NCBI GenBank assembly: GCA_964036045.1
Contig: OZ038379.1
Location: forward strand, 31,558,001 to 31,622,000
From: Eutreptiella sp. 'Long Island Sound 2002'
Lineage: Eukaryota; Protista; Euglenida
Direction of reading: 5' to 3'
DNA: 64,000 nt
Position 1 is the first letter of the stretch, and the number at the start of each line of letters is the position of its first letter. Positions 6,740 through 52,149 of the stretch are shown piece after piece. A model generated the notes under the pieces. It saw only the letters and a list, made by a program, of their open reading frames with translations, had not been told where the DNA came from and did not search any database. The position numbers and the translations under genes are program-made.

Positions 6740-8295
6740 GTTGGGGGCTGCAGAGGGGGAGAGGGGCAGGCTGTGCACTGGAAGATGGTCTATTTCTTCA
6801 CAGGTGGGATGGCATGGGGGGATGTAGAGGGTTGTTGAGTGTTGTGGAGGAAAGGGGAAGCGCAGTCCCTGCCATGCAGGGGCACGATGCTACCGCTGAT
6901 TAGCGGTTGTGGAATGAAATGATTCTTGGAGGTCAGACCTGCATCAGGAGATTGCGTGGTGCACTGCCTCTGCGTTTCATGGTGATTCATCTTGTCCCTC
7001 CACTTCACAGCACGACGCACATAAATGCCAGTTTCTGGTTGGTGTTCCCCCCCCCCCCCCCCCAAGTGCAGCCGCCTTGTCAGGAGACGCCGTAGAAAGG
7101 GGGTGTCCTGTCCTTGGAAGCAGCGGCTGTGAAGGAAATTTATGGCCCCCCGCAACTCACACCACCTGATAACCGGATTGGCCCATGGGCACATATCGCC
7201 CACTTTTATGGCAGGATGGGCAACCGGGCGACAGTACATATTTGCCTTTGCACCTTTTTTGTGTCTTTTTGTACAATTTCACAGTGAGCGAAAGTGTTCG
7301 AGGGGTGTGCCGTACGTGATGAAGGGAGTGTCCCGGGAGGGAGGAGGGGCAGTCTCCAACATAAACACCATCGAGACCGATCAGCATGCGCGACGCGCTG
7401 ACCCCATGAGTCTGGATGCAGTGAAAGGGGACACCAGGAATGAATGGAACCCGACTGCAGCATCTACGCTACAGAGGTCCCAGGCAGTCCGAGGCACTAG
7501 AACTAGTATGGGCAAGCAGCCCGCGACCTCAAGCGATCTACCCTCGACGTGTTCTGGACATGCCATAGGCTCCATGCAATAGGACTGGGAGTGGCGATCG
7601 TCGCTATTGGACCCCCAAACCCGCTCCTATCACACGGGTCCTCCAAGCGGCATTGGCCCTGGCCAACTGTGAGGTGGCATCGGTTGTGGTTCAGCGCCGG
7701 TAGGGCAGCCCCGTTGGGTAGCACAGCGTACTCACCTACCTACCGTACCCACGTGTTCACCGTCTTTGCGGCGTCGACCGTTCAGCACCATGACACAGGG
7801 GGTTGCAGCAGGACACCATTACAGATGCCGGGTTGTCCATACCGATTCTGTGGCATTCTGCCCGCCAGAAACTTGGGCTAACGCCATTTCCCAGGATTTT
7901 GTCAGTTCCGCCACGCAGCAACGGCCCGTAAGTGGCACACCAGATCATCGGTGGACATTCTTTTGGGTCTAAAACACTGAGAAACCGGTGCTCACAGCAA
8001 TGTCTTCATGGACCACATGAGAAATGTTGACGGACGTGCCCTCAGCACTGCAACATTCCACAAAAGTATGGCAGTCTCCCTCTCACGATGATTCTGAGGC
8101 CAAAACTGTCGCTTGTTTCCTGCATCTTCAATGACGCATTTGTGCCTTTCCTTTTGAGACATTCCCCTGCCTGATCCCTGGCACCTCCCCGACCCCGTCA
8201 CTGCCCTGCCCGGCCCCTGCACTCCTGACCCCGTCCTCGCCCCTCTGGACCCCTCACACCCACTCTCTACTTCCGTCGGTTTGTCGCTGTTGCAG

Positions 8296-11200
8296 TCCGC
8301 CGTGGTTTGGAATGAGCAGCAGCTCGCCGACATTCGCAAAGGCCGGACGGTTGCACAGAAGGTATCCGTTGGTCGGGACCATGCAGGGTGGCGGAGATGG
8401 TGCACATGAAGGGGATGCGCCGGACCTGGGAACCTGTAGTGCTGCGTGTGGTGCGTAATGTGTTGTGTGCGGGGTTTGTTGTGTATTTTCTACGCACCCA
8501 ACTGTGACTGTGTCCTATCACTCCCCTTACTCACACGGCATCTCGCATCCATCCTCTGGATATTGCACACAGGATTTAGCATGTGTGTTGTGATACATCT
8601 TATGTGAGAGTGGGTGTGTGGTGTGTTGCATAGAGTCTATTGTGTGGTGTGTGCATGTGCCGCACAGAGTGCACCTTGCAACGATCTGGTGCTCAGCGCA
8701 TGCTATGCCCCCGACACCCAAGACCCCCCGCTGCAAGCCTTTGCCATGCGAACCAGACAGCCAAACGCTCGGTGCATGCAGACATCCTTCTCCACGAAAC
8801 GTAAGCCCTCCATGGCAAGCGGCAAGCACGCGTGCTGCAGACACCACGGCCGACACGTGTGCCACACCACCCCAACCGATTGAGCCCCGCCACCCCTGGC
8901 CCCCACCGCAAGCTCCTCCTGCCTCGCCGCCCCCAGTGCCAGAGCCAGCCCCCCCCCCCCCCCCCTCCCCGCCACAAGTGGACTACACAACCCGACCCAC
9001 AACCCCCCCCTCCCCCATCAGCAGTATCCATGTATCAACGACAATCCCTTCGGCACAGGCATTCCGCCTCCTATGCAACCGGACCATTGCACAGGTGCAC
9101 AGAGGGCATTGTTCAGGCCAGTAGATGCTCGGGACCTAAAAGTGACCCACCTCCTGCACAGTGGAAACTCTGACCCCCTGACCATGTGGCCCTTTAGGCT
9201 GACAGTGCCGACCAGGAGCCGCGGAGGCGCGAAGTGGACATGCTGGAGGAGGAGCAGGTCCGGGAGGAGAAAAAGCTGCAGAAGAAGCGCAACCGTGAGC
9301 ACCGCAAGGAGGTGATTGAGAAGGTGAAGGAGGAGATCGGCTCTGCCGAAGTGCTGAAGGTTTGTCCGCGCCCGCGAGGCCAATGTCTTTTTCGAGCGCC
9401 AGCACAATGGACAACCGAGCCAGTGTTTCGGGTAGTTTGCAGCCCATTTGTTCCCTTTTGTGAATCCCACGCATCCCAATGAATTGAACATTGTACATTA
9501 ATGAATCCCGACATAAAATGGTATGTGCACGAACATGGGCTGTGGTTGTGATCAGTCCAAAGGGTTCTGGCCGATGATGATTTTGCCTGTGGCCAGACAT
9601 GTGAAAACACGTCTGTCGCTGACTGCAACTGGGCGCACTGTGTTGTTCACTGTGTGTGTCTCCATGTGCATCCCATGTGGAAAGTGTATGTGCACGAATG
9701 AATCCCACAAACAAACAAATATGAATTCACAAGAATAGGGACGCAAACCAACCAACTCACTGGCACAGTCTCGATGTTGTTTGTTGTTGCGCTGCGGGTG
9801 GCTGCCTTTCTGGGGGTTTTCCTCTTTAAAGAGGACACCGGAAAAGGCGTGTGCAGCGGTGCGGGCCTGTTCGTATCAAGTCCATGTGTTGGTGCGCTGT
9901 GTTGCTGCCAATGTACCGCAGGCTGTGGCCGGCAAAAAGGTGGAGACGAGACGCGAGTCGGATATGTTGGAGGAGCGGCTGCTGGCAGAGGAGCGGAAAC
10001 GGAAGCGGGAGCAGGAGGAGGAGTACAAACAGGAGCTTGTCAAGAAGGCCAAGCAATTGCTGACGGATTCGGATTACAAGGTCGCCTGTCCGTAGGGAGA
10101 GTGTTCGACCGGCGCACGTACGGCGGGCAACATGTTCAGCAACTTCCTAGAAATGATGCCATGCCACACCAATCCCGGCCAGGGCAATTCCTTGCATCCC
10201 GTGGACGTGCGTAGTGTGATATGGGGATCATTTTCAATCGTCGGTCGTTCTGTATCCAAACTGCCTGCGACCCCTTCAAGCAAAGGCGAGGGTGGGGTCA
10301 GATACCCTGCACCCCCCTCCCGCCGTGTTGTGCGTGAAGGGGGACCCAGGCCCATTCAAAATGCCAAGTGAGTAAAGATGAAGCACGCGAATGCCCCTTT
10401 CCTCTTTGTGTCGCAGGCACCAGAAGAGCCCGCCGCTTCATCCGCTGCAGACGCTACTGCACCCGCAGCAGACACTACTGACGCTACTGCGCCTCCGCCA
10501 GAAACTGCACCCACCGCAGAGGCCACCGAATCTGCAGCAGACAGCGTCGCACCGGAAGAGGAAAAGGCAGAGGCGGAAGCAGAGGCGGAGCCGGAGGCAG
10601 AGGCAGAGGCTATGGATGCGGACGAGGCTCCGGCGCATTCTGCAGATGACTACATGGCAGAAGGTATCGATCCGGCTGTCCTCGGCCCGTTGCAGCCTGC
10701 ACGCTACCCCATGGATATGCTGAGTGCTTGCCTCCGGGTCAGAGGCCAGAAAAGAGTTTGTGTCCCGGTAAGAGGCCTCAAATTTTTGGATTTCTGTCGT
10801 AATTTTCATCTGCCCACTGGAGGAAAATTGCGTCGGTTGCTGGTCTGGCCTGGCGGGTGGGTCCTGTAACTCAGCCCCCACCCCCACCCCCATTGGCCGT
10901 CGCTAAGCACATCTCTGGCACTGCCAGTTCACTCTTCCCTGGGACATTGTTTCTTTGCGTTGAGCACCCTCTGCAGTGCCATCCCTTAAAGTGGAGCAGG
11001 TGTGAGGGGGGCTGAAGGCACACAGTTTTGGTCATCCAGGGCAGGGGCCAAGTGCACAGCGTGATGCGTTTTGGCCCCCTTATCTCCGCCCTCCCCTGAG
11101 GACCGCTCTCCGTCGCCTGGGATCTCAGAGTGCACCGACCCCACAATCAAGGATGCATGCCCCAGCCTTTGGCCGAAGGAGCGTTGCACCTTCCGTAGAC

Positions 11201-38094: not shown

Positions 38095-40760
38095 CTGCTT
38101 GAGGGGTGCCTGCCGGGGATGGCAGCCCCCACTGGCACAGGCCCACTAGCTGGGCGGGACAGGGAGCCCTGCCCATTCGGTGGTCGCTAGCTATGGAGCG
38201 ACTGCGCGGGATGGCAGCCTCCAATGGCACATGCCCATTGGCTGGGGGGACGGGGAGTCCGGGCCAATCAATTGTCGCTACCTTTGGAACGCCTGTGTGG
38301 GATGTCAACCCACAGTGGCAGAGGCCCACGGGCTAGGGGGACGGGGAGTCTTGCCCCGTCAGTTGAGCTGCTCTAGGGGTGCCTGTCTGGGATGGCGGCT
38401 GCCAACCGCGCGAGCCCACTCGCTACGGGGGACAGGGATTCCTGCCGAGTTGATGGTCGCCACCTATGGAGCGCCTGCGAGTGATGGCGGTCTCCAATGG
38501 CACAAGCCCACGGACTGGGGGGACAGGGACTCCTGCCCAGTCGGTGGTTGCTGCCTATGGAGCGCCTTTGGGGGATCTCAGCCCCCAACGGCGCGTGCCC
38601 ACTGGCGGGGGCGGGGGGGGGGGGGGGGGTCCTACCCAGTCGTAGGTCGTTGCCGCCTATGGGGCGCTTGCGGGGGATGGCGGCCCCCAACGGCGCGGAC
38701 CCATTGGCTTGGGGGACGGGGAGGCCTGCCCCGTCGGGTCGCTGCATATGGAGCGCCTCGGCGGGATGGCAACCCCAAACATCGCAGCCCCACGGGCTGG
38801 GTGGACGGGGAGTGCAGCCCAGTCTTTGGTCGCCGCCTATGGAAATCTTGCGTGGGATGTGAGCCCACAACGGCACGGGCCCACGGGCTACAGGGACAAG
38901 GAGTTCTGCCCAGTCAGTGGTCTCTGCTCAAGGGGTGCCTGTCGGGGATCGCAGCCCCCAATGGTGCGGGCCCTCAAGCTTGGGGGACGGCGAGTTCTGC
39001 CGATCTGCTGGTGCTTGCCTACGCACCGCCTGCGGGGGTTGGCAGCCCCCAGCTGTGGGGGCCCACCGGTTGGGGGGATGGGGAGTCCTACCCCGTCGGT
39101 GGTTGCTGCCTATGGAGGGCGTGCGGGGGATGGTAGCCCCTGATGGTGCGGGCCCACCGCTAGGGGGACAATGAGGCCTACCCAATCCGTGGTCGTTGCC
39201 TATGGAGGTTCTTTGGGGGACGGCAGCCCCCAACGTTGCACGCCCACAAGCTAGAGCGATGGCAAGTCGTGCCCAAAAGATCGTTGCTTCCTATGGAGCG
39301 CCTATGGGGGCTGGCAGCCCCCAACAGCGCAGGCCCACGGGCTGCAGGGATGGGGTGACGTGCCTTGTCGGTGGTCGTTGCCTATGGAGTGCCTGTGGGG
39401 TATGGCAGCCCCCAACAGCCCGGGCCCACTAGCGGGGGGGACGGGGAGTTGTGCGCAGCGGGTCACTGCGGCCTATGGAGCGCCTGCGGGGGCATGGGAG
39501 AACTGCCCGGTCGGTGGTCGCTGAGGATGGAGCGCGTGCGGGGGATGGCAGCCCCCAGCAGCGCGGGCCCACTAGCTGGGGCGACAGGGAATCGTGCCCA
39601 GACGCAAGTCGCGGAGGACCGCCTCCGGGGGACGGCAGCCTCCAACGGTGCGGGCCCATGGGTTGACGGGACGGTGAGTTTTGCTTAGTCGGTGGTCGCT
39701 GCTCAAGGAGCACCTGCGGGGGTTGGTAGCCCCTAGCGGCAGGGGCCCACTAGCTGGAGTGGCGGCGAGTCATGCCCGGTCGGTGGTCGCCGCCTATGGA
39801 GGCCTCCAGGGAATGGCAGCAGCCAATGGCGCGGGCACACGGGCTTGGGAAGACATGCAGTCCCGCTCAATTGGTGGTCGCTGCCTATGCAGCGCCTGCG
39901 TGGGATGGCAGCCCCCAACGACGCGGGCCCACGAGTTGGGGGGAAGGGGAGTCGTGCTTAGTCGGTGGTCGCTGCTCAAGGGGCACTTCCGGTGGCTAGC
40001 AGCCCCCAACGGCGGGGGCCCACTAGCTGGTGGGACGGTGTGTCGTTCCCGGTGGGTGGTCGCTACCTATGGAGCTCCTGTGGGGCATATCAAGCACCAA
40101 CTGGCGCGGGCCCACGTGGTGGGGGGACGGGGAGTCCTGCCCGGTCGGTGGCCGCCGCCTATGTAGTGCCTGCGTGGGAAGGGACCCCATAATGACGCAG
40201 GCCCATGGGTTGTGGGGGAGGGGACTCTTGCTTAGTTGATGGTTGCTGCTCAAGGAGCACCTGCGGGGGCTGGCAGCCCCAAATGGCGGGGGCCCACTAG
40301 CGGGGGGAGACGGTGATTCGTGCGCGGTCAGTGGTCGCCGCCTATGGAGCGCCTCCGGGGGATGGTAGCCCCCAATGGTGCGGGCCCATTAACTTGGGGG
40401 ACGTGGAGTCCTGGTTGCTCGATGGTCGCTGCCTTTGGAGCGCTTGCGTGGGATGGCAGCCTCCAATGACGCGGGCCCACGGGTTCGGGGGACGGGGAGT
40501 CCCGCTTTGTCGGCGGTCGCTGGTCAAGGAGCACTTACAGTGGTTGGCAGCCCCCAACATCGGTGGCCCACTAGATGGGGGGACGGCGAGACGTGTCCGC
40601 TCGGTGGCTCCGGGGCATAGCAGCCCCCACTGGCGCGGGCCCACGGGGTGGGGGGATGGGGAATTCGGCCCAAGTCGGTGGTCACTGCCTGTAGAGTGCT
40701 TGCGGGGTATGGCAGCCCCAATGGCGCAGGCCCCTCAATTGGGGGGATGGGGAGTTCTGG
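38095..40760 (+). repeat. ~90-bp GC-rich satellite, about 29 degenerate units
   Basis: CCTATGG(AGCG) recurs at 38463, 38554, 38656, 38745, 38836 and onward. Confidence 0.92.
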
Positions 40761-41079: not shown

Positions 41080-43211
41080 GTGTTGCACTCTGCACATGAC
41101 TGCAATAAGATCTATGGGGGAACAAAGTGGGTGGAGAGTGAGTTGGTCATCGGGGGTGACCAACCCTTTGTGAGACGCCTTATGGGCGTCTCAAAATCGC
41201 TAATGGTGGGCTCTATTTACAATATGGGTGTGTGGGGCAAAGTTGCGGCGGCATGGGTGAAAGCGGGGGTCTGCCGTACATTCGAGGGGTAGGCGGTGGC
41301 CCGTTGCCGCTATCAGGAGACGGACCTCAGCTTGGAGAATGGGGGGTGCGTAGGGGACTCGCACATTGTGGTGGAGTGGTGCTTGGTCTTCCTATGCAAT
41401 CTCCATTGTTGCATGGCCATGGGCCGCCTCTAAGTGGCCTTCATTGAGGCCCGCCTAGGAGACTTTCCCAAGGACAACGCCGCGGCCGTGCAACGCGTGC
41501 TATACCGGGCACGCACGGCTGTCAGGTTGGGTGCCTTGCCTTCAACTGACGGAGAAGAGGCACGGGCGTTGTTCCTCGCATGGGGAAAAGCGGCCCACTA
41601 TTGGCCTATGCCCCGGTCGTCAGTCTTAGTTACTTTCTCTAGATTACTATTTTATTGTTCGATCGGCGGCACCAAAATTCAAAATAACAGCTAATATTGA
41701 TTTCGAAAAATTAACAACGAGATCACAAAAATTAATCATTTTACGTCCTACTTTTTCAACAAATCGTGGATGTCCTAGTGAACGCCGGGGATGCGCGCCC
41801 AGCGTGCATCTCGTGGCGCGACCGCGACTAGGTGCAGGAGCTGCCACTGGGCAGCCCGCAACGCTTGCTTGCGGCCGACCCCGCCTTGCGGTGGGCAATT
41901 CTAAGGGGATTGAGGGATCGGGAGCAAGGGAGTGTCTGCTCGGAGGTCTGGGTGGCCTCTAAGCATTACAAGGCTAGGGAGTGGTTCACAATTGGACATC
42001 TGGGGTACACAAGGGCGGAGGATGAGGGGCTGTGGGCAGGGATGGTGGGCGGTGATTGGGAAGGGGAGGGTGAGGAAGAGTTGAAGGAAGAGACCCCCCC
42101 CCCCCCCCCCTCCCCGACGCCAAACCAACACCCCCAAACCCTCAGCCACCAAAGTAGTGGCAAGAAAATCCCCAAAAGCATTTTGAGTCGGATGACTCAT
42201 CGGATGGAGCCATCCCCCCCCCCCCAAAAAAAAGAACCCCCCCCCCCCCAAGCTCCCCTCGGCCACAAAGGCCACCCCCACCCCCGAGACAAGTCCCCCC
42301 CCCCCTTGGGGGGGGAGGGGATGGTGCCAACGACCCCATCGTTGGCATCAAGGTCCACGTCCCGAACTCAAGGGGCGTGGAGTTGGGCACCGTGCGCGGT
42401 GTCCACTAGAAAAAGGCGGGCATTGTATGGGTGAAGTTCCCAGGCAACTCTCAGGTTCCCAAGCTCTCCGAGGTTGCTCGCAACCTCCTCTTCCCCTCCC
42501 CCGAGGCCGCCCATGAACACGTTGAGCGTGTTCGCAAGCCCAAGAAGGCCAGCCCCTCCCCCCATCCTTCGGGCTAGCCTCACCCGAAGACTAACCCCCC
42601 GACTGTCCCCAAGACTAACCCCTAGACTGACCCCAAGACTGACCCCCCGACTGACCCCAAACCAGAAAACAGCCCCAACCCTAACCCAACCCTAAACCTT
42701 ACCTAGCAATTGTGGGACCCCAAAGATGGGTCCCAAGAAGTGTGAGAACGCATCACACTCCAACAGGTGACACCACCTGTGGAGCAGTACAAAAACCGGC
42801 TATGATGGCCAGAAATGGTCCAGAGGTGGATAAAAAGGTATTTGTTGTCTTGTTGTGTATTTGTAGGGTTCTTTAGGGGGGATTAATTTTCGCATAAAAC
42901 AGTTGAGTTCTGCGAGGTTAATATTAACGTCGGCGACGCACTAATTTTTGACATTTTAAAAATTCATTGAAAAATTTAAACATAGAATTAAACCCTTGGA
43001 CCGTTTTAACATTGTTTTGGAAGGAAACCGGTGAGACCCCCACCCCCCAAAACCCGGATGAAACTGGCAGCCGGTCCCGTAAGGCACCCCACCGGGGGGC
43101 ACTTTTTCCCGTCTAGACCTGTCAACCCCCCCCAAAGGGGTCAAGTTTCAGTTTACGTATTAACTTTTGGCCAAAAATTAAAAATATTGGTTTTAACATA
43201 GGTTTCTAGGG
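41080..43211 (+). mobile_element. Divergent, internally deleted relative of the 46442-51842 transposon
   Basis: 41080-41600 reads LVIGGDQPFVRRLMGVS..RTFEG*..LCNLHCCMAMGRL*..DGEEA..F.AW. ORF2 homolog pieces lie at 41763-41930 and ~42320-42560. An AT-rich subterminal region ends in TTTCTAGGG at 43211 (candidate terminus). The 5' end was not found. Confidence 0.75.
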
Positions 43212-43214
43212 GGA

Positions 43215-45915
43215 TCGGCACCGGGCCTAGATGGTTTCGGACAAGACATCTATCACCACTTCCACCACGGCTTCTTCCCACGCATGATTCACATCATTCA
43301 AGACTTTGAGTCCACGGGTACACTCCCGGATCACTAGTCGGTGCAACTACCGAACCCCATCCCCAAGACAGCATGCATTCCCACCTCAGGGGACCTACGT
43401 CCGCTGGTCCTACAGAACTCGGCCCTCAAATGGGTCACGGCTACTGTACTGCTCCAATTAAAAGACCCCATTGTGTATTTGACGCCGCCAGAGCAGCGCT
43501 GCTTCGTCCCAGGTCTCAATCTCCACGGCCATTTATTCTTGTCGCACGCGATGTGGAGGGCTGTGAAAAGTGGCCTCTTTGTGCGCACGGACTTTGCCAA
43601 GGCTTTCGATTCTGTGTGTCATGTGTGTGCGTCGGCGTTTTTCCACAGGATGGGCCTCCCCGCCAGCCACACACACACAGGCTCCTCTTCCTTTTCCAGG
43701 CACCAGTGCGCCTCATCTTGCTGGTAGATATCTACCATGGCCACGACTACCGCCCTAAGTCAGGGCTTCGACAGGGTTGCCCCTTATCCCCGCTCTTCTT
43801 CTCCCTTCTCATATCACCACCCATCCAACAATTGCAAACAACAGCAATTCTAGTAAGGGTACTGGTGTATGCAGATGATGCGATGCTCATTTTTAACTGC
43901 TGCTCCCGCCGCGCACACAAGCAAACCCGGCGGTGCTTGCCGATTTTTCATCGGTTTGCGCCCTACACAGGGCTAAAAGCCAATTTTGACAAATTGCACC
44001 TCATCCCCAAGGGGGAATGGACCCCCGAGCAAAAGCAATTCCGAGCGCGCACGGGCATGAAAGTCAAAGATTCAGCCAAATATTTGGGGATGAAATTTGG
44101 GGAAGTCACCCCGCAACAAGCCTTTGCGCCTGCCATCCAAAAAGCCATGCTTCGAGCATTGGCAATGCACCACTAGGACATGACACTTGCGGAACAGCTT
44201 GCCCTCTTGGAGCTTTGGATTCGGCCCCTCATGTCCCTCCTTGCTAGAGTTGTTTTCCAGATAAGGCTGCGATTGCATCGCTGCAAAGCGTGTACCATAC
44301 GGTGTTGCGTATAACCCATCGCGGCATCACCATGTTCCATTCTGTCATAGGGCCGGGACGCACGTGGATTTTCATCGCTTAATGCGAAAGTAGTAGTCCG
44401 TAGTATTATAGTAGTAGTAATCCGTAAAAGTTCTTGCTCTTGCAGCACACATCTACATTTGTAAACCCCACACATGGGGACACGGCCCTCCCGACGGTAG
44501 TCACAGACTCTTTCACACAATGGGCCGCCAACTGGGGGGTACCACATGGCCCCTCTTACCTGCCCACCCTCTAATTGCGACAACTGCCCTACGCCACAAT
44601 GCCACTGCTGGCACTGTTGGCTAAGTCTTTTTCTCTGCTACTATCCACGTCCACCGTAAGGGTACCGCCAGTGCCCTCGCAAGAACCTCATTTGTGGCAC
44701 AATCGCCGCTTTGTGGACTACTGGGGACACATCATCTACCGTCCGGTATGGATCTCACAAGGTGTTCGCACATGGTCACAATTTACTCTTGCGCACATAC
44801 GCTCGCTGCCGCACACATACAGGTCCATTTATCGCCTAGCCTAGCCTAAGCTACGAAAATTGGCGCGTGCACCGACACAACGGCACCGACGGCCGTCCTT
44901 TTCCATTAAGTAGTTGTCACGCAGAGTAGCGACAAAGGTAGCGCCAGTTCAAGATGTTGACGCCGGTCTGGGCCCCACAGCTTGGCAACGGCTGCACACC
45001 TTACCCATCCCACACGCGCACAAACATGTCATTTGCGAGGCATTTTGGCACATGCTGCGCACGGGACATCGGCTGCGCCATTGGCTCCCACACCAACAGC
45101 TATGCCCCGTCCATGGTATGGATCACACACACGAGCATGCAATGATCACATGCACCAACCTAACAAAAATATCGCAACGCTTGGCCCCATGCATGCTGCC
45201 TTTCAAACTCAATGGAGTTTGTGTCCGCACGTTTCACTCGATGCCAATCGCGCATCTGGCGGACTCGCTTTCACGCATCCCGGGCCTAACCGCTTGATCG
45301 GCCATCATGGCCAGTTGGCAAACTGTCCATAACGTCGGGTCAACCCCGGCCCTGAATGCATGGCACACCTTTGTAAGGAACTGAAAAAGCCAATGCCCCG
45401 GCTGAGGCCGGGCGCCTTAGGCCGGGCGCCTTCAGAACTCCCTAAATTTCGAGCAATCTTTTCTTATCCCTCGGACACAAGAAGACGTTATAAATCAACT
45501 AGGGGATGCAGAGGACTGGCTAGACCTAGCTAGACGGCTCGATTTTGTTTCTCTGTCCGCCTTTGCACACTCCAATTCTTTTGACACGGTCTCAATGTCC
45601 TCTGTGGACGACCCCAACCCTGATGCACTGAGCTCCCCCGCGGGGATTGATTCCCCACAGTTGGATTCATTGGGTCTAAGTGAAATGCACAGCCCGCCGT
45701 ACCACTCACCCATGTTTAGGCTGGACTCCGACCTGGAGCCGGACCCACCCACCCGACGGGCACCCCCGTTAAGTGCATTGGGGCTAAAAGCCATGCTCAC
45801 ACCGCAATGTATTGCCTCCCCCAACCTCATCGGTGGATTCCGGCGTGCCCTGTCTAGATTTTCTGCAAACCTCATCACCGGGCTCCACTTGGTCCTGCTC
45901 CAGTCATGTGAGTGA
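43215..45915 (+). mobile_element. Degenerate non-LTR retrotransposon (L1/Tx1-like) ORF2: RT plus zf-RVT-like region
   Basis: PGLDG, DLRPLVLQN, DFAKAFDSV, GLRQGCPLSPLFF, LVYADD and AKYLG, then W..LHTLPIP...EAFWHMLRTGHRL...CPVHG..HTHEHAMITC. Many stops and frameshifts. Confidence 0.9.
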
Positions 45916-46544
45916 TAGATTGCGCAAGCGGCACTGTCAGAGTAAGCGGCGACGCGGTACCCCACTCCGTGGGGGAGAAATAGCACGGCGTCGATGTGCC
46001 TAGCGCAATCCACCACGGCCATCAGCGCTGTGCTATCGGTTAGAGGGTAGACTGGATTCCGGTCAAGCGAAATACACGCAAGAGACATCAACGGTCTAGT
46101 AGTATGTGCCATGGACCGGCAATCATCATCATCACGGCTTCGAACCCAGGTTCCCCCGCACGTCTAGGGGCCCTTTGCCAGCGACCCAGCCACTGCCCCC
46201 TTCAGCATCGAGCGCAACCATCCGTACCGCCGGTGGATGGGTGGCGTGTCTTGTCATCATACTCTTCTACATGTCTGATATATACTACTTTTTGTTTGTC
46301 TTGCACCAAAAACACACAATACCACACCTATAGCAGCGCGCTCCGCCGCCGGTACCACCGGCTGACGGCTACCGCGTCTCCTCCTCATACTCCTCTTCGG
46401 CTTGTGGGTTCAAACCGACGACTCCAAGTTGCCTAGCGGTGCCCTTGGTACACGCTAGAATACCCAATCTCGTTCTAGCCTAGAACCGGCTAGAGCGGCT
46501 AGAACGAAAAAAAGCTGCGGGGGGGGGGGGGGATGAGGTGTCTA

Positions 46545-47724
46545 GCTGGACCCCCCTATCCATCCTCGGGGGCCCATACTTTTTTTTCACAATTTCATTG
46601 TTTTCACCTGATTTTGGAGTCCAAAAAATTTTCGTTCTAGCGGCGTTCTAGCGACGCTCGCTAGAACGTCGCTAGAACGCCGCTAGAACGGTTCAATAGA
46701 ACACTGCTAGAACGATATATATGAATGCTCCGCCACTCCTCCAAGAGAAGCTGCCCCGGCTACCATAGCCAGCCGTGGCCAATCACAGGGTCCCGATGCT
46801 GGACCCGACTCATGGAGCGCCGGGTTCCCCCCCCCCCCCACCCCCCGGTTAGCCCGGTTAGCCCCCCACCGCACCCCATAGGTCACTTGGAAGGTCACTT
46901 GCGGGCCGGCGCCGGGTCACTTGGTGGGGGGTTAGCCCGATTAGCCCGGTTAGCCCGATTAGCCCCCCTGCCCCCCCAGGCCCCCATTCGCGAGTCGCGA
47001 CACGCAGGTTACCCCTCCTGCGTGGTGGGGGGTTGCCGGGGCTCATCCTTGCTCCCGGCACCCCCCTTCTCACCCCCCGTGTCCCCTTCCTTCTCACCCC
47101 CCTTGTCACCCCCCACCTCACCCCCCCTTGTCACCCCCCTCCCCCTTGTCACCACCCTCGCCCCCCTCGTCATCCCCGTCATCCCCGTTGTCCCCCTCGT
47201 CCCCGGCCCCCAAGGCCTCCCGGAGGTGGGCCTCCGCCTCCTCCCGGGTGCGGAAGAGAAGCTCTCCCGGCACCCGGAGGGTGCCCCCCTCTTTCTCCCG
47301 CTTCCTCTTCTTCCCCTTCTTCCCCTTCTTCCCCCCCTCCCCCTCCCCATTGGACCCCTGCGACACCACCCACCACTCCCCCGGGTCCAACTCCTCATTC
47401 CAATCCCCCAACACCGTCACTTGGCTGACGGTCCCCCCATTGCCCCCCTCCGCCCAAGGGACATACCGGGCGTCCCCCACACCCGGCACATTCCCATAGG
47501 GGTCCCGGCCCCTATCTTGCAAGGGGGGGGGCTTGGGGTTGGGGGGGGGGTGGCTTTGCCCTTGCCCTTGGCCTGGGGCTTGGCCTTGGCCTTGGGCTTG
47601 CCCTGCTGCCCTTGGGGGGGGGGCGCCTCTTCGTCGCTACTCTCGAAGTGGCGGGGTTTTTTCTTGGGGGCCTTGGGGGTGGGTTTGGGGGCCTTGGGGG
47701 GGGGTGTCCTCCCCCCGCTGCCGG

Positions 47725-47768
<44 letters not shown>

Positions 47769-49665
47769 TCCCCCGCCCGGTCCTACAACCTCCCCCAACC
47801 CTTGCGCTGCGGGTCCATGCCCCCCGCACTCCTGCCCGCTTCCCACCTACCCAAACCCTCCAGCACCGAGAGGGCCAATTTGGGGTCCGTCCCCATCATC
47901 CGGCCCAACTCGGTGACCCCCACGAGGCGCGTCCGCCCTCCGCCATCGCGCCACTCCACGTGCACCCCGCGGGGGTCGGCTCCACACGTCTGCACGCTGA
48001 CAACCTGAAGACACAAACAAAATGCAGGTGCGTTCTAGCGACGTTCTAGCGGCGGCAGCACGGCGGTGGCTAGATCAAGACTAGAACGGTTCGCTAGATC
48101 AACGCTAGAACGCTATCAACAAACCGTGCCTTGGCGGTCCAGGGTGGGGGAGATGGCCCCCAGGGCCTTGGCGAAGGCGTCCCGGGGGTTGGGGGGGTGC
48201 GGCTGCGGGGGGCCCCCAGCGGGGGTTGCGGCGGGCTTGGGCTTGGACTCGGGCCGGGAGGCGACGCCGTGCACCACCCCGGCATACGCCCCCCGGTTCA
48301 CCGCCTCGGGGTTGAAACCCCCGAAGTCCAGTAGCGCCGAGCAGGTCGGCGTCCAGAAGGCCTTCCCCACCCAATCAACCCCCCCCCCTCCAAGCCCAGC
48401 CCCTGCCAGCAGTGGGCGACGAATCGCCAGTGGGTGCCCCCCCCCTTTTTCCGCTCGGGGGTGAAGATGTTGGTTTGCGCCAACTCAAACATCTTCACCC
48501 CCATTTTTTTTGGGGGGGGGGGGGGGCAACTCCCCCCATCCCTTCCCCGGCCCCGGCAACTCACGTTGCCACCCCCACCACCCGTTGACCACCCCTAGGT
48601 GCAGGGGCTTGTCCAGGTGGACAACCCCCCCCTCGTCCACCCATACCCACCGCCCCGCCCCCAACAGCGGGTGGTGCACCCGCACCAACAAAAACCGGAG
48701 AGTAAATACCGGACTCTCCGGGGCGACGAGGAGGGGGGTGTCCAAGTTTGGGGGGTGGGGGCCAGCCAGGACAGCCGGGTCCCATGGCAGGTCCTGGAGG
48801 GCCCCCGCATCCCTCGACCCCATTATCCCCGTGAGCCACTGGCTCACCCCCCCCCCCCCCCGCCGGCGTCGCCACCACCACCTTCGCCTCCTCCTCCTCC
48901 TTCACGATCTCCTCCTCCATCTCCTCCGCCTCCACGTCCAACTCCACCACCTCGTCCACCTCCTCCTCCTCCACCCTCGCCACCACCGCCGCCAACTCCC
49001 TCTCGCTCCGCCGCACCGCGCGATTGAACCCCTCGATCGCCTCCTCCTTCTCCGCCACCTTCGCCTTCGCCTTGCGGAGGTTGGCCTCCGCCATGCGGAT
49101 CCTATCCGCATCCCCCCCGTCCCGGAGGCTGGCCAATTTGGTCTCCCATTGGGAGACCTTGGTCTCAGCCCTTCCCTTGGCCGCCTTGGAGGCTGCGAGG
49201 GAAGCCGAGAGCCCTTTGAGCTCCCCCCGCGCCTCCTTCACCTCCGGGTCCTCCGCGGGGACCGCTGCCGACCCCTGCTTCCTGGCGACCAAAGGGGGAG
49301 GGGGTGGCAATGGTGGATGTGGGGCTTGGGGCTGGGGCTTGGCCTTGGGCTTGGCGAGGGGGGGTGCCTTGCCCTTCGGGGCCTGCTCGGCCTTTGGCTC
49401 CGCCTCCTCGGCCGGAGCCTGCCGTGCCTCCCTCTGCGCCTCCAAGATCTGCGCAATCAGCGCCTGGGTCGCCGCAGTCTGTAGCAGACACAGGAGCGTT
49501 CTAGCGGCGTTCTAGGCAACTGTTGTAGCGGCGTTCTAGCGACAGTCTAGCGGCCGATCCTGCTGCCTAGATCAAGACTAGAACGATTTCCTGGATCACC
49601 GCTAGAACGCACAGCACGGCATATACTTGCTTCAGCAGCTCGTCCATCAACTCTTGCGATGCCAT
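46545..49665 (-). pseudogene. Transposon ORF2 (exons ~49665-49627, 49478-48125, 48004-46737, ~46607-46545): coiled coil, chromo-shadow-like and Tudor-like segments
   Basis: GT-AG phase-0 joins MASQELMDELLKQ|TAATQAL... and ...DRQGT|VVSVQTCG. Frameshifts fall in G/C homopolymers. Two segments are homologous to ORF remnants at 41763-42560. The last exon is tentative. Confidence 0.65.
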
Positions 49666-49750
49666 CTTGCGAAATAGTCTAGTTCAGGGAAGCCTGCATG
49701 TGGCCCTGGCCCCTCCTTACCTCCATGGCATCCCTGCCCGAGCATGGCAC

Positions 49751-51620
49751 TTACGACCGCGGCCCCCCATGCACAACCCACGACACGTCAAAGTATGCAA
49801 ACAACCATGTCATGCACTGTGCTTGCACATTGGCCTCCCTGTGGATGGCCGACCACTGACAACCCGACACCTCGTCCACCCCCTCCACCCGACAGGCCCC
49901 CCTCCCCCGGTTGCTGTGCTCGTTGTGACCATGTTTCAGAAAGCGGTTAATGCTTTCCGAAATGTCACCCGAGAACATAGCCAGGCCAAATGGCTTAATG
50001 TTCTGCAACATGGTATCTACATCATGCTCAAGGCTTAATAGATACCATGATGTTCTTCCGACAGTACAGTGGCACCTTAATCGCGGGCCACGGCAGCACA
50101 ATTCAATGGGTTAGGGCCCTGATATGTACAATAGAGGGGTTGCAGCAGGTCCCACATGTTCGCGATGGCCTTGTACTTGGCCGTGCTTGGCCTAATGCCG
50201 AGGCACTTAGCAATATCCGGCCATGCGTCAAAAAAATTGGCCGTCTCTTCCCCGTCCGGGGAAGCTGACCCATAAACGCTCCAACCTGCACGCCTCTCCG
50301 ACAGGAGAACTTGCAGGTCTTGACGGAGCGCAGGGGTGGCCGACCTAGCCTCCCGGTCGACAAACTCCCCCAACAAGCGGCCCATGGCCATTGTCAAGTG
50401 CAAAATGCACAAGACGACTGAGGCACGTGGCAATTTCAAAATGCGCTGCGTACTGCAGCCAGCGGCTTGTCAGGAAGGCGTCCCAAGGAGGAAGGCCGTG
50501 TAGTTGGCCTCATCACCCTCCATGGTCCGCAGGTTAGCACTACCCTCCCAAGTCTTCGTTTGGGCATTCCATATCCCCTCATTGAACATGGAGCCCACTT
50601 GGGGGCATGTGGACACCCCGACCACCCTTCGCGTCCACGGTTGATCCCCCCCGAGGATCACCTTTGCCTCCTCCTTGGAGGCCCCCTATTGGACCAGCCC
50701 CGTGTCGATGATATCTTGAATCACCTAAACACGAAACATGGGGGGTGGTTAATTTCGTTCTAGTCTAGTCTAATCTAGCGTCTAGCGAGCGGTGTTTGAG
50801 GCCGACTAGATCGAAACTAGAACGAGTGAAAGGCACTAGGTGAGAGGAGTACCTCCGAATTGCGCCTCCACAACGTGCCAAGGGTGTCCATGGCCTTGTC
50901 ATCGCAATTGGCCATGCTCAACACCCAAAGGCCTGCCGGGGAGCGGGCCAAGCGGTCGGAGTTGGCCAAGGAGATGGTGAGTTGGGTCCAATTGCCCCCG
51001 GCCACGGGGTAGGCATCTCCCCGGACGATGAACGTCAACGGGAAGGTGCGGTTGATTGACCGCACCAAGCCCGGCCGGGAGAGGATGTATGTGACCCATG
51101 AGGCGAAGGGCCATGAGATCCCGGTGGCCTTGGGCAACACTCTGGCAACGGGGTCATCCAATTGCACCGGGGCGACCAACTCCTTCCAACGGGCTTGGAA
51201 AGCCCGCTCGGTACAAATTGGACGGGAGTAGGGGCCACTAGGGACGGTGCGGTGGTACTCCAACTTACGGAGCGTGTAGAGCTCCGAGAGGGTCCTCCAC
51301 GAGGACTTGGGGGGCCTCATGTTGAGCACTAGTTCACACATGGCGGTGGGGGGGAGTAGGGAGGCGGCGTATGCCTCAACGGCGGCCTTGCATGCCTCAC
51401 CCGTGGTATGGGTAGAAGTGGCGGAGTTCACATATTGGACGGCGTTGTTGAATTGCCGCCGTGCTAGGGGGCATGATAGCGCCCACGTGGCCAAGTAATT
51501 GCCCACCCGCTCATCCTTGAGGTTAGATGCCCTACTCAACTCCCGTAGTGCCTTAGACAAGAGGGAAGTATCCTTCCCGGTTGAAGAGGGAGCAAGGGGG
51601 GAAGTGGTGGGGCGTTTCAT
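49751..51620 (-). pseudogene. DDE transposase (~580 aa, exons 51620-50853 and 50724-49751), RAG1/Transib/CMC-like
   Basis: Motifs FIVRGD (D~202), VILGGDQ (D~283), CILH (CxxH), PDGEE and FSGDISESINRFLK..N.HS.R (E~512). Lesions: in-frame stops at 50686-88 and 50470-72, and a frameshift near 50080. Confidence 0.8.
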
Positions 51621-52149
51621 TGCAAAGAAATGTGCAATATCTAAGCGGGAAAGAAGGAAGCATGGAACAATGCACTACGGACAATAGCAAGCATGCACGG
51701 TGCAACGATGAAGAAATTGGCACATCTGGGTAGACATTATATCGTTCTAGTATTGATCTAATCTAGGCTAGAACATCTAGAACATCTAGGCTAGAGTGTT
51801 CTAGGCTAGAACGAGATTGGGTCTTCTAGCGTGTACCAAGGGTGGTGCTACCGCTACACTGCGGCGACCAAGAAAGCCAAACTTGGCACCAGTGCCCATG
51901 GTTCTGGTCCACCTTGGCTGACACTGAGTTTCTTTGCACACCACAGGTGATCAGGTACAGACACTAACATGACCGACAGATGCTCCGGTGTCACGGATGT
52001 ATCACAGACATGTGCATACCGGATGAGATTGTACTGCATGTGAGTGGCGTCACCGGTCAGCCCCAATTACCGGATCAGCCCTACACCGGAAGTAAGGGTT
52101 GAAAGTGCCTATGGGGGGGGCGCTTTCAGTCAATGAGATACCGACCATC

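Follow-up and report, generated by a model that had tools for sequence, protein, structure and literature searches.

A high-copy DNA transposon of an estuarine protist with a 2-bp target-site duplication and a transposase of predicted RAG1-like architecture

The window analysed here is a stretch of 64,000 nucleotides (64 kb) from contig OZ038379.1 of Eutreptiella sp. 'Long Island Sound 2002'. Its positions 46442–51842 hold a pseudogenised copy of a cut-and-paste DNA transposon of about 5.4 kb, present in high copy number in this estuarine protist. The transposase is predicted to have the architecture of the RAG1 core, with an RNase H domain, ZnC2 and ZnH2 regions and a C-terminal domain, and insertion is accompanied by a target-site duplication (TSD) of 2 bp. 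The copy is very probably a dead representative of an unnamed lineage of the CMCT clade, one that carries an Asp-Asp-Glu (D/D/E) transposase of RAG1-like fold and is not Transib in the strict sense. This clade comprises EnSpm/CACTA, Mirage, Chapaev, Transib, Plavaka, ESTA as well as Lanisha, whose TSDs measure 2–5 bp (Kojima 2025, PMC12730594).

What delimits the element? Its two ends (table 1) are inverted repeats of 52 nt with 92% identity. The outer 45 nt, the length given in the original prediction, match at 97.8%. The 19-nt terminal sequence occurs at only two places in the window, namely the element ends, where chance would supply 0.02. Together with the transposase gene and the accessory gene, both on the minus strand, these unique termini bear out the description of a two-gene DNA transposon with terminal inverted repeats (TIRs).

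The duplication itself had been proposed to be 5 bp long and GC-rich, CGGTG on one side and TGGTG on the other. We compared seven complete copies, the one in the window and L002, L003, L004, L005, L008 and L009. In all seven the 2 bp outside the CCC...GGG termini are identical on both sides. Read in the orientation of the transposase, they are CA in the window copy and TA, TT, CA, CA, GG and TA in the other six, in the order given. The chance that seven dinucleotide pairs agree in this way is about (1/16)^7, and the duplication has no fixed sequence across the seven copies. A 3-bp duplication fits none of them (0/7), and the CGGTG/TGGTG pair is a chance near-match of neighbouring bases around the real duplication, TG/TG. 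All copies begin CCC(T/C)TGGTACACGC. L006, a divergent sister family of this genome that was reached via the relative P0333, has the termini CCCTACGTG...CACGTAGGG with flanks AT/AT. Since AT is self-complementary, it lengthens the L006 inverted repeat by itself; an alternative description of L006, as an element with CATCCC termini and no TSD, was rejected in favour of CCC termini with an AT duplication. The 5-bp duplication is thus withdrawn, other copies with a TSD of 2–3 bp or none having been named beforehand as a refuting result, and with it goes the main mechanistic link to Transib.

How abundant is the element? Searches with exon 1 and with exon 2 of the transposase each returned about 195 cluster representatives from one ENA assembly, 199 in the case of exon 1, and some of those clusters have up to 226 members, which implies hundreds of copies in that one assembly. 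In the main blocks of their alignments with the window copy, the fetched copies show 89–93% identity, one block of L005 being 84% identical. L002 is a complete copy of 5489 bp in which both transposase exons are open and both splice sites are present. The sequence was also found in DNA runs labelled with two organisms and in several estuary metagenomes, and 5–10% of the sampled words of the element are present in three metatranscriptome runs.

The transposase gene appears to consist of two exons separated by a putative intron (table 1). The intron is supported by two relatives. Once it is removed, the junction of exons 1 and 2 aligns without a gap to the intronless relative P0276, with which exon 1 is colinear; in P0380 the frame runs on through an insertion located there. 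When the exons of L002, an intact sister copy, are joined conceptually, the residues presumed to be catalytic fall at D202, D283 and E513, spaced 81 and 230 residues apart as first claimed, and the RGD, GGD, CILH (CxLH) and SESINRFLK motifs are likewise present. The window copy itself is damaged. It has a stop at 50686–50688, where the intact sister copies have W, another at 50470–50472, where they have L, and a 1-nt frameshift near 50080. To these lesions, which had been recognized at the outset, comparison with the sister copies adds a third stop, at 49751–49753, where the others read Q and run on through a conserved Cys.

Is the catalytic triad a feature of this copy or of a family? Among 1.84 billion representative proteins, an exon-2 profile found 523 at E ≤ 1e-3, all of them unnamed open reading frames (ORFs) from environmental or unannotated assemblies. 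Members at 25–48% identity keep the motifs GGD.PW, C(I/V)LH..MA.GRL, PDGEET, S.YL..LE.D and ES.N..LK...HS.RGGG, and the His of the second of these is invariant. In three relatives the first Asp lies in the same ORF (V[KR]GDG.P). The D/D/E residues are conserved across a family that has diverged to 25–48% identity. Conserved Cys and His residues are found in the family columns at C90, C106, H109, C209 and H219.

How would such a protein fold? A first model, computed with AlphaFold2 from 87 family sequences, represents the relative P0276 and has a predicted template-modelling score (pTM) of 0.83 and a predicted local distance difference score (pLDDT) of 79. In it D47 ends strand 1, D128 lies just after strand 4, C208 and H211 open a long helix and E359 sits in a helix, so that D, D and E occupy the secondary-structure elements expected from RAG1 and Transib. 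A C/D-x2-H motif about 80 residues past the second Asp opens a long helix at the place occupied in RAG1 by DALH. When the model was compared with the PDB by Foldseek, all 47 matches at E ≤ 0.001 were RAG1, BbRAGL or HzTransib (E 1e-9 to 5e-4, TM 0.53–0.57); the next match, Hermes, reached E 6e-3 and TM 0.25. VIA-align gave RAG1 a Z of 16.7 over 369–379 residues (model 7–412 against RAG1 553–1005), BbRAGL 15.4, HzTransib 14.8, the P element 12.3, an IS256-type enzyme 7.4 and Hermes 7.2. RAG1 aligned over about 370 residues; the P element did so over about 280 and Hermes over about 250. Among Swiss-Prot models the top eight matches were all RAG1, with hAT proteins lower in the lists. The likeness to the solved structures (HzTransib 6PQN/6PQX, mouse RAG1 6XNX and 4WWX, BbRAGL 6B40) extends from the region before the RNase H domain to the C-terminal domain.

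A second model, of exon 2 of L002 and thus of the window's own family, has a pLDDT of 91.6 and gave the same ranking, with RAG1 at E 5e-6 and TM 0.55–0.63 and HzTransib at only E 0.06. By both models, RAG1, BbRAGL and HzTransib are the best matches among solved structures by a clear margin. This likeness is nonetheless not specific to them. In a shape search of an atlas of predicted structures (the Atlas), Plavaka clusters scored TM 0.64–0.69, an EnSpm cluster (Transposase_21/DUF4218) 0.66 and RAG1 clusters 0.61–0.64. RAG1 and Transib lead the PDB lists because no other members of this wider fold class have solved structures. Structure prediction had been suggested as the check on a Transib/RAG assignment. 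It places these proteins first among solved structures, but the fit of EnSpm and Plavaka models is just as good. A search by protein-language-model features led from exon 2 to clusters that have the RAG1_ZnH2, ZnC2 and RNase_H families; the same feature search of the Atlas with exon 1 was uninformative.

What do these results say of the place of the family? Its 2-bp TSD lies within the CMCT range, and it shares the fold of EnSpm, Plavaka and RAG1. Neither property is foreign to the clade: members of it, ESTA among them, have already been tied to RAG1 via HHpred, and 2-bp TSDs are known from Mirage, ESTA (TA) and PlavakaA (PMC12730594). ESTA differs in that its TSD is TA, and Mirage fits in a comparison by TSD length (2 bp) alone. 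Several results weigh against the placement. All CMCT lineages are said to carry the motifs C(2)C and H(3-4)H, and 5'-CA..TG-3' termini are found 'in most cases', though not universally (PMC12730594). The window family has CCC..GGG termini instead of CA..TG. In column statistics for 24 diverse members neither C-x2-C nor H-x3-4-H comes out as conserved, which sets the family apart from the published description of the lineages. The zinc ligands had been called incomplete in this copy; they are indeed lacking, not through any defect of the copy but throughout the family. None of the 24 members has a Pfam family match at E ≤ 10, the models for Transposase_21 (PF02992), DUF4218, Plavaka and RAG1 included, and neither the four ORF pieces of the window nor the intact sister ORFs matched a transposase family. 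Searches of PDB chain sequences with one protein and with the family profile retrieved no RAG1 or Transib chain. The P0276 model is that of a relative with 34% identity, and its first three strands are of low confidence (pLDDT 50–67).

Might the family belong to the true Transib/RAG lineage, its target stagger and termini having changed? The rank of RAG1, BbRAGL and HzTransib among solved structures and the exon-2 language-model features would agree with this, as would the finding that TSD length and TIR termini vary among elements that are Transib by sequence, with 3-bp and TA duplications reported and, in Nozomi-related fly elements at 42.8% identity to HzTransib, duplications of 5, 3 or 2 bp (2026 preprint, 10.64898/2026.08.26.747230). 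TSD length thus aids classification without being absolute, and a 2-bp TSD taken by itself is compatible with Transib ancestry. Those fly elements, however, are clearly Transib by sequence, whereas the window family has no match to RAG1 or Transib detectable by sequence search and only 9–13% identity to them in structural alignments. HzTransib also fits less well than RAG1, and EnSpm and Plavaka models match as well as RAG1 models do. Besides the 5-bp TSD, the family lacks the terminal CAC(A/T)(A/G)TG heptamer that resembles the RSS, or any CAC(A/T)GTG-like one, as well as sequence similarity at the profile level and the zinc ligands, C(2)C past the second Asp and H(3-4)H ahead of the Glu. We conclude that it is not Transib in the strict sense, and an altered Transib/RAG lineage seems to us distinctly unlikely. 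Of the original proposal, a RAG1/Transib-related lineage with an accessory gene, the core architecture and the second gene stand; strict membership of Transib does not, given the 2-bp TSD, the missing profile link and a fold shared with other groups. A place inside CMC proper, near Mirage or EnSpm/CACTA, with two proteins from one transcription unit and subterminal arrays serving as protein-binding sites, has a real but small chance of being correct. It would accommodate the 2-bp TSD, the 8-bp motif densely arrayed in either orientation close to the termini, the second gene downstream on the same strand, the fit to the EnSpm and Plavaka models and, judging from the sequence, the phase of two donor sites described below. 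Against it, Transposase_21, DUF4218 and Plavaka remain unmatched, and the termini are CCC and not CAC(TA). En/Spm of maize has a 3-bp TSD and CACTA termini, and neither these nor the Transposase_21 (tnp2) domain is seen here.

Could the RAG1-like fold be a modelling artefact, or a generic DDE likeness, in an element of some unrelated superfamily, for example hAT, P or MULE? The Z of the P element and the presence of hAT proteins in the lists might be taken to suggest so, and Yuan and Wessler reportedly noted in 2011 that C/D-x2-H and E-x-x-N-x-x-x-K-like motifs are common to several superfamilies. Two independent models of different proteins nevertheless rank their matches alike and with high confidence (pTM 0.83; pLDDT 79 and 92), RAG1 aligns over a greater length than the P element or Hermes, and Hermes reaches a TM of only 0.25. 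The TSDs of these superfamilies are generally known to be 8 bp (hAT), 7–8 bp (P) and 8–10 bp (MULE), lengths with which a 2-bp duplication does not agree. This explanation is highly improbable. At the other extreme, the family might be a RAG1-fold lineage of superfamily rank in which the C2H2 zinc module was lost or was never present and that carries its own end-binding motif in every intron of its genes; this we consider unlikely. Placement as an unnamed lineage of the CMCT clade remains the reading that we prefer.

The least expected feature of the element is the distribution of a short motif. All 21 exact CTAGAACG matches in the window fall inside the element, where 0.53 would be expected by chance, and they form five clusters, two at the ends and three in the predicted introns. 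A near-perfect hairpin at 46633–46690 has a folding z-score of −10.4. Each predicted intron contains an inverted pair or array of the motif and folds with z-scores of −2 to −3, the fold-back arrays lying in the accessory-gene introns at about 49483–49627 and 48017–48124 and within the transposase intron (50725–50852). The L006 family has the same layout with a different motif, GGTTSAACC, for which all ten matches lie inside the element against 0.23 expected (positions 7500–7770, 8950–9000, 10047 and 12560). Because L006 repeats the layout with another motif, the arrays in the introns and the termini appear to change together; in other words, introns and termini appear to co-evolve, as far as these sequences tell.

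Maize En/Spm is among the closest parallels to this organization. There, too, a single strand encodes two proteins, a short motif is arrayed in both orientations near both ends and the TSD is short; the predicted transposase fold fits the Transposase_21/DUF4218 model as well (TM 0.66), although the family has no Transposase_21 match by sequence. The window element differs in having motif arrays inside every predicted intron, an arrangement that to our knowledge has not been described for En/Spm. Near the 3' end of the transposase gene (49690–49760, minus strand) there is a strong splice-donor-like site, GAG/GTAAGG, in phase 0. Since the first donor of the accessory gene is also in phase 0, both might splice to a single acceptor and so yield a product that is fused or alternatively spliced, as in En/Spm.

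What might the second gene encode? Its predicted product is a coiled-coil, low-complexity protein with regions that have no recognizable family. Pfam gave only weak matches of coiled-coil type, the Atlas gave none, and tblastn found no match in the L006 element or in the divergent fragment of the window (table 1). The gene probably contains a small GTGAGT...poly-C...AG intron. Its reading frame slips at homopolymer runs that differ between copies: G/C runs of differing, frame-shifting length are seen at 48505–48525 in the window and at 8050–8075 and 8160–8180 in L002, and these differences may reflect either real slippage or errors of long-read assembly. By eye we noticed a possible H-x-D...H dioxygenase pattern, the domain being in one frame in no fetched copy. 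Short GGTTAGCCC / GATTAGCCC repeats stand in both orientations at 46840–46965, in the stretch of the element that separates the left subterminal array from the accessory gene's end.

How might the element move? The transposase is predicted to have the RAG1-type order of domains, an RNase H-like core with an insert at the place of ZnC2, a helical region that opens with C-x2-H at the place of ZnH2, and a C-terminal helical domain. It would bind the inverted repeats that begin with CCC and nick at the CCC ends, and by analogy with RAG1 and Transib it may form a hairpin on the flank. The element would then be excised and inserted with a stagger of 2 bp, the stagger being proposed because of the 2-bp duplication. 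The CTAGAACG arrays would be bound, as in En/Spm, by the N-terminal region of the transposase or by the accessory protein, for which they are most likely the binding sites.

Table 1. Parts of the transposon and a related fragment, with their positions in the window.
Feature	Positions	Strand	Remarks
Left copy of the 2-bp target-site duplication (TG)	46440–46441	.	
TIR, 3' end of the element in gene orientation	46442–46493	+	starts 5'-CCCTTGGTACACGC; one CTAGAACG motif inside
Subterminal array, eight exact CTAGAACG motifs	46471–46714	.	includes the near-perfect hairpin
Accessory gene, several predicted exons	47118–49667	-	exons proposed from ORFs and GT..AG sites only
Transposase exon 2	49754–50724	-	D283 (GGDQPW), C-x2-H (CILH), putative catalytic Glu E513 (SESINRFLK)
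Putative transposase GT..AG intron	50725–50852	-	inverted pair of CTAGAACG motifs; from comparison with P0276 and P0380
Transposase exon 1, 256 aa	50853–51620	-	N-terminal region and putative first catalytic Asp D202 (FIVRGDAYP)
Subterminal motifs, opposite end	51743–51813	.	two exact CTAGAACG and degenerate CTAGAAC copies
TIR, 5' end of the element, upstream of the transposase	51791–51842	-	
Right copy of the 2-bp target-site duplication (TG)	51843–51844	.	
Divergent fragment of the transposase family	41095–41601	+	5'-truncated, decayed

In the divergent fragment listed in table 1, the two stretches that match have 42% and 30% identity; GGDQPF and C-x-LH are retained, and there are two in-frame stops. 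Elsewhere in the window, a long GC-rich array of degenerate tandem units at 38100–40700, which translates in several frames to ...GDGS/EPQ...W.D.E..., looks like a satellite or minisatellite, and an ORF on the plus strand at 43341–44176 with a reverse-transcriptase-like YADD motif is probably a fragment of a retroelement. Rfam and tRNA scans of the window gave no match. The neighbours of sister copies (L003 1–266 and L006 339–5852) include a piggyBac-type transposase gene (PF13843) and an element resembling a long interspersed nuclear element (Exo_endo_phos and RVT_1); the genome is rich in other mobile elements.

If the link between the introns and the motif arrays is true, it would point to a regulatory connection between binding by the transposase or accessory protein and the way in which the element's own transcripts are processed. 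The introns might instead have been made from fold-back derivatives of the element itself, which would be of interest in a euglenid-like host. The family does not open a new way to trace how V(D)J recombination arose; the specific hallmarks of Transib are missing, and the link between the clade and RAG1 has already been published. What it does indicate is that the RAG1-core architecture occurs in an abundant transposon lineage, an orphan by sequence, in a microbial eukaryote, where it is combined with a 2-bp stagger and no zinc ligands. The known range of the EnSpm/Mirage/Chapaev/Transib group is thereby widened, and, as a natural contrast, the family can be used to ask which parts of the RAG1 fold govern target spacing and end recognition.

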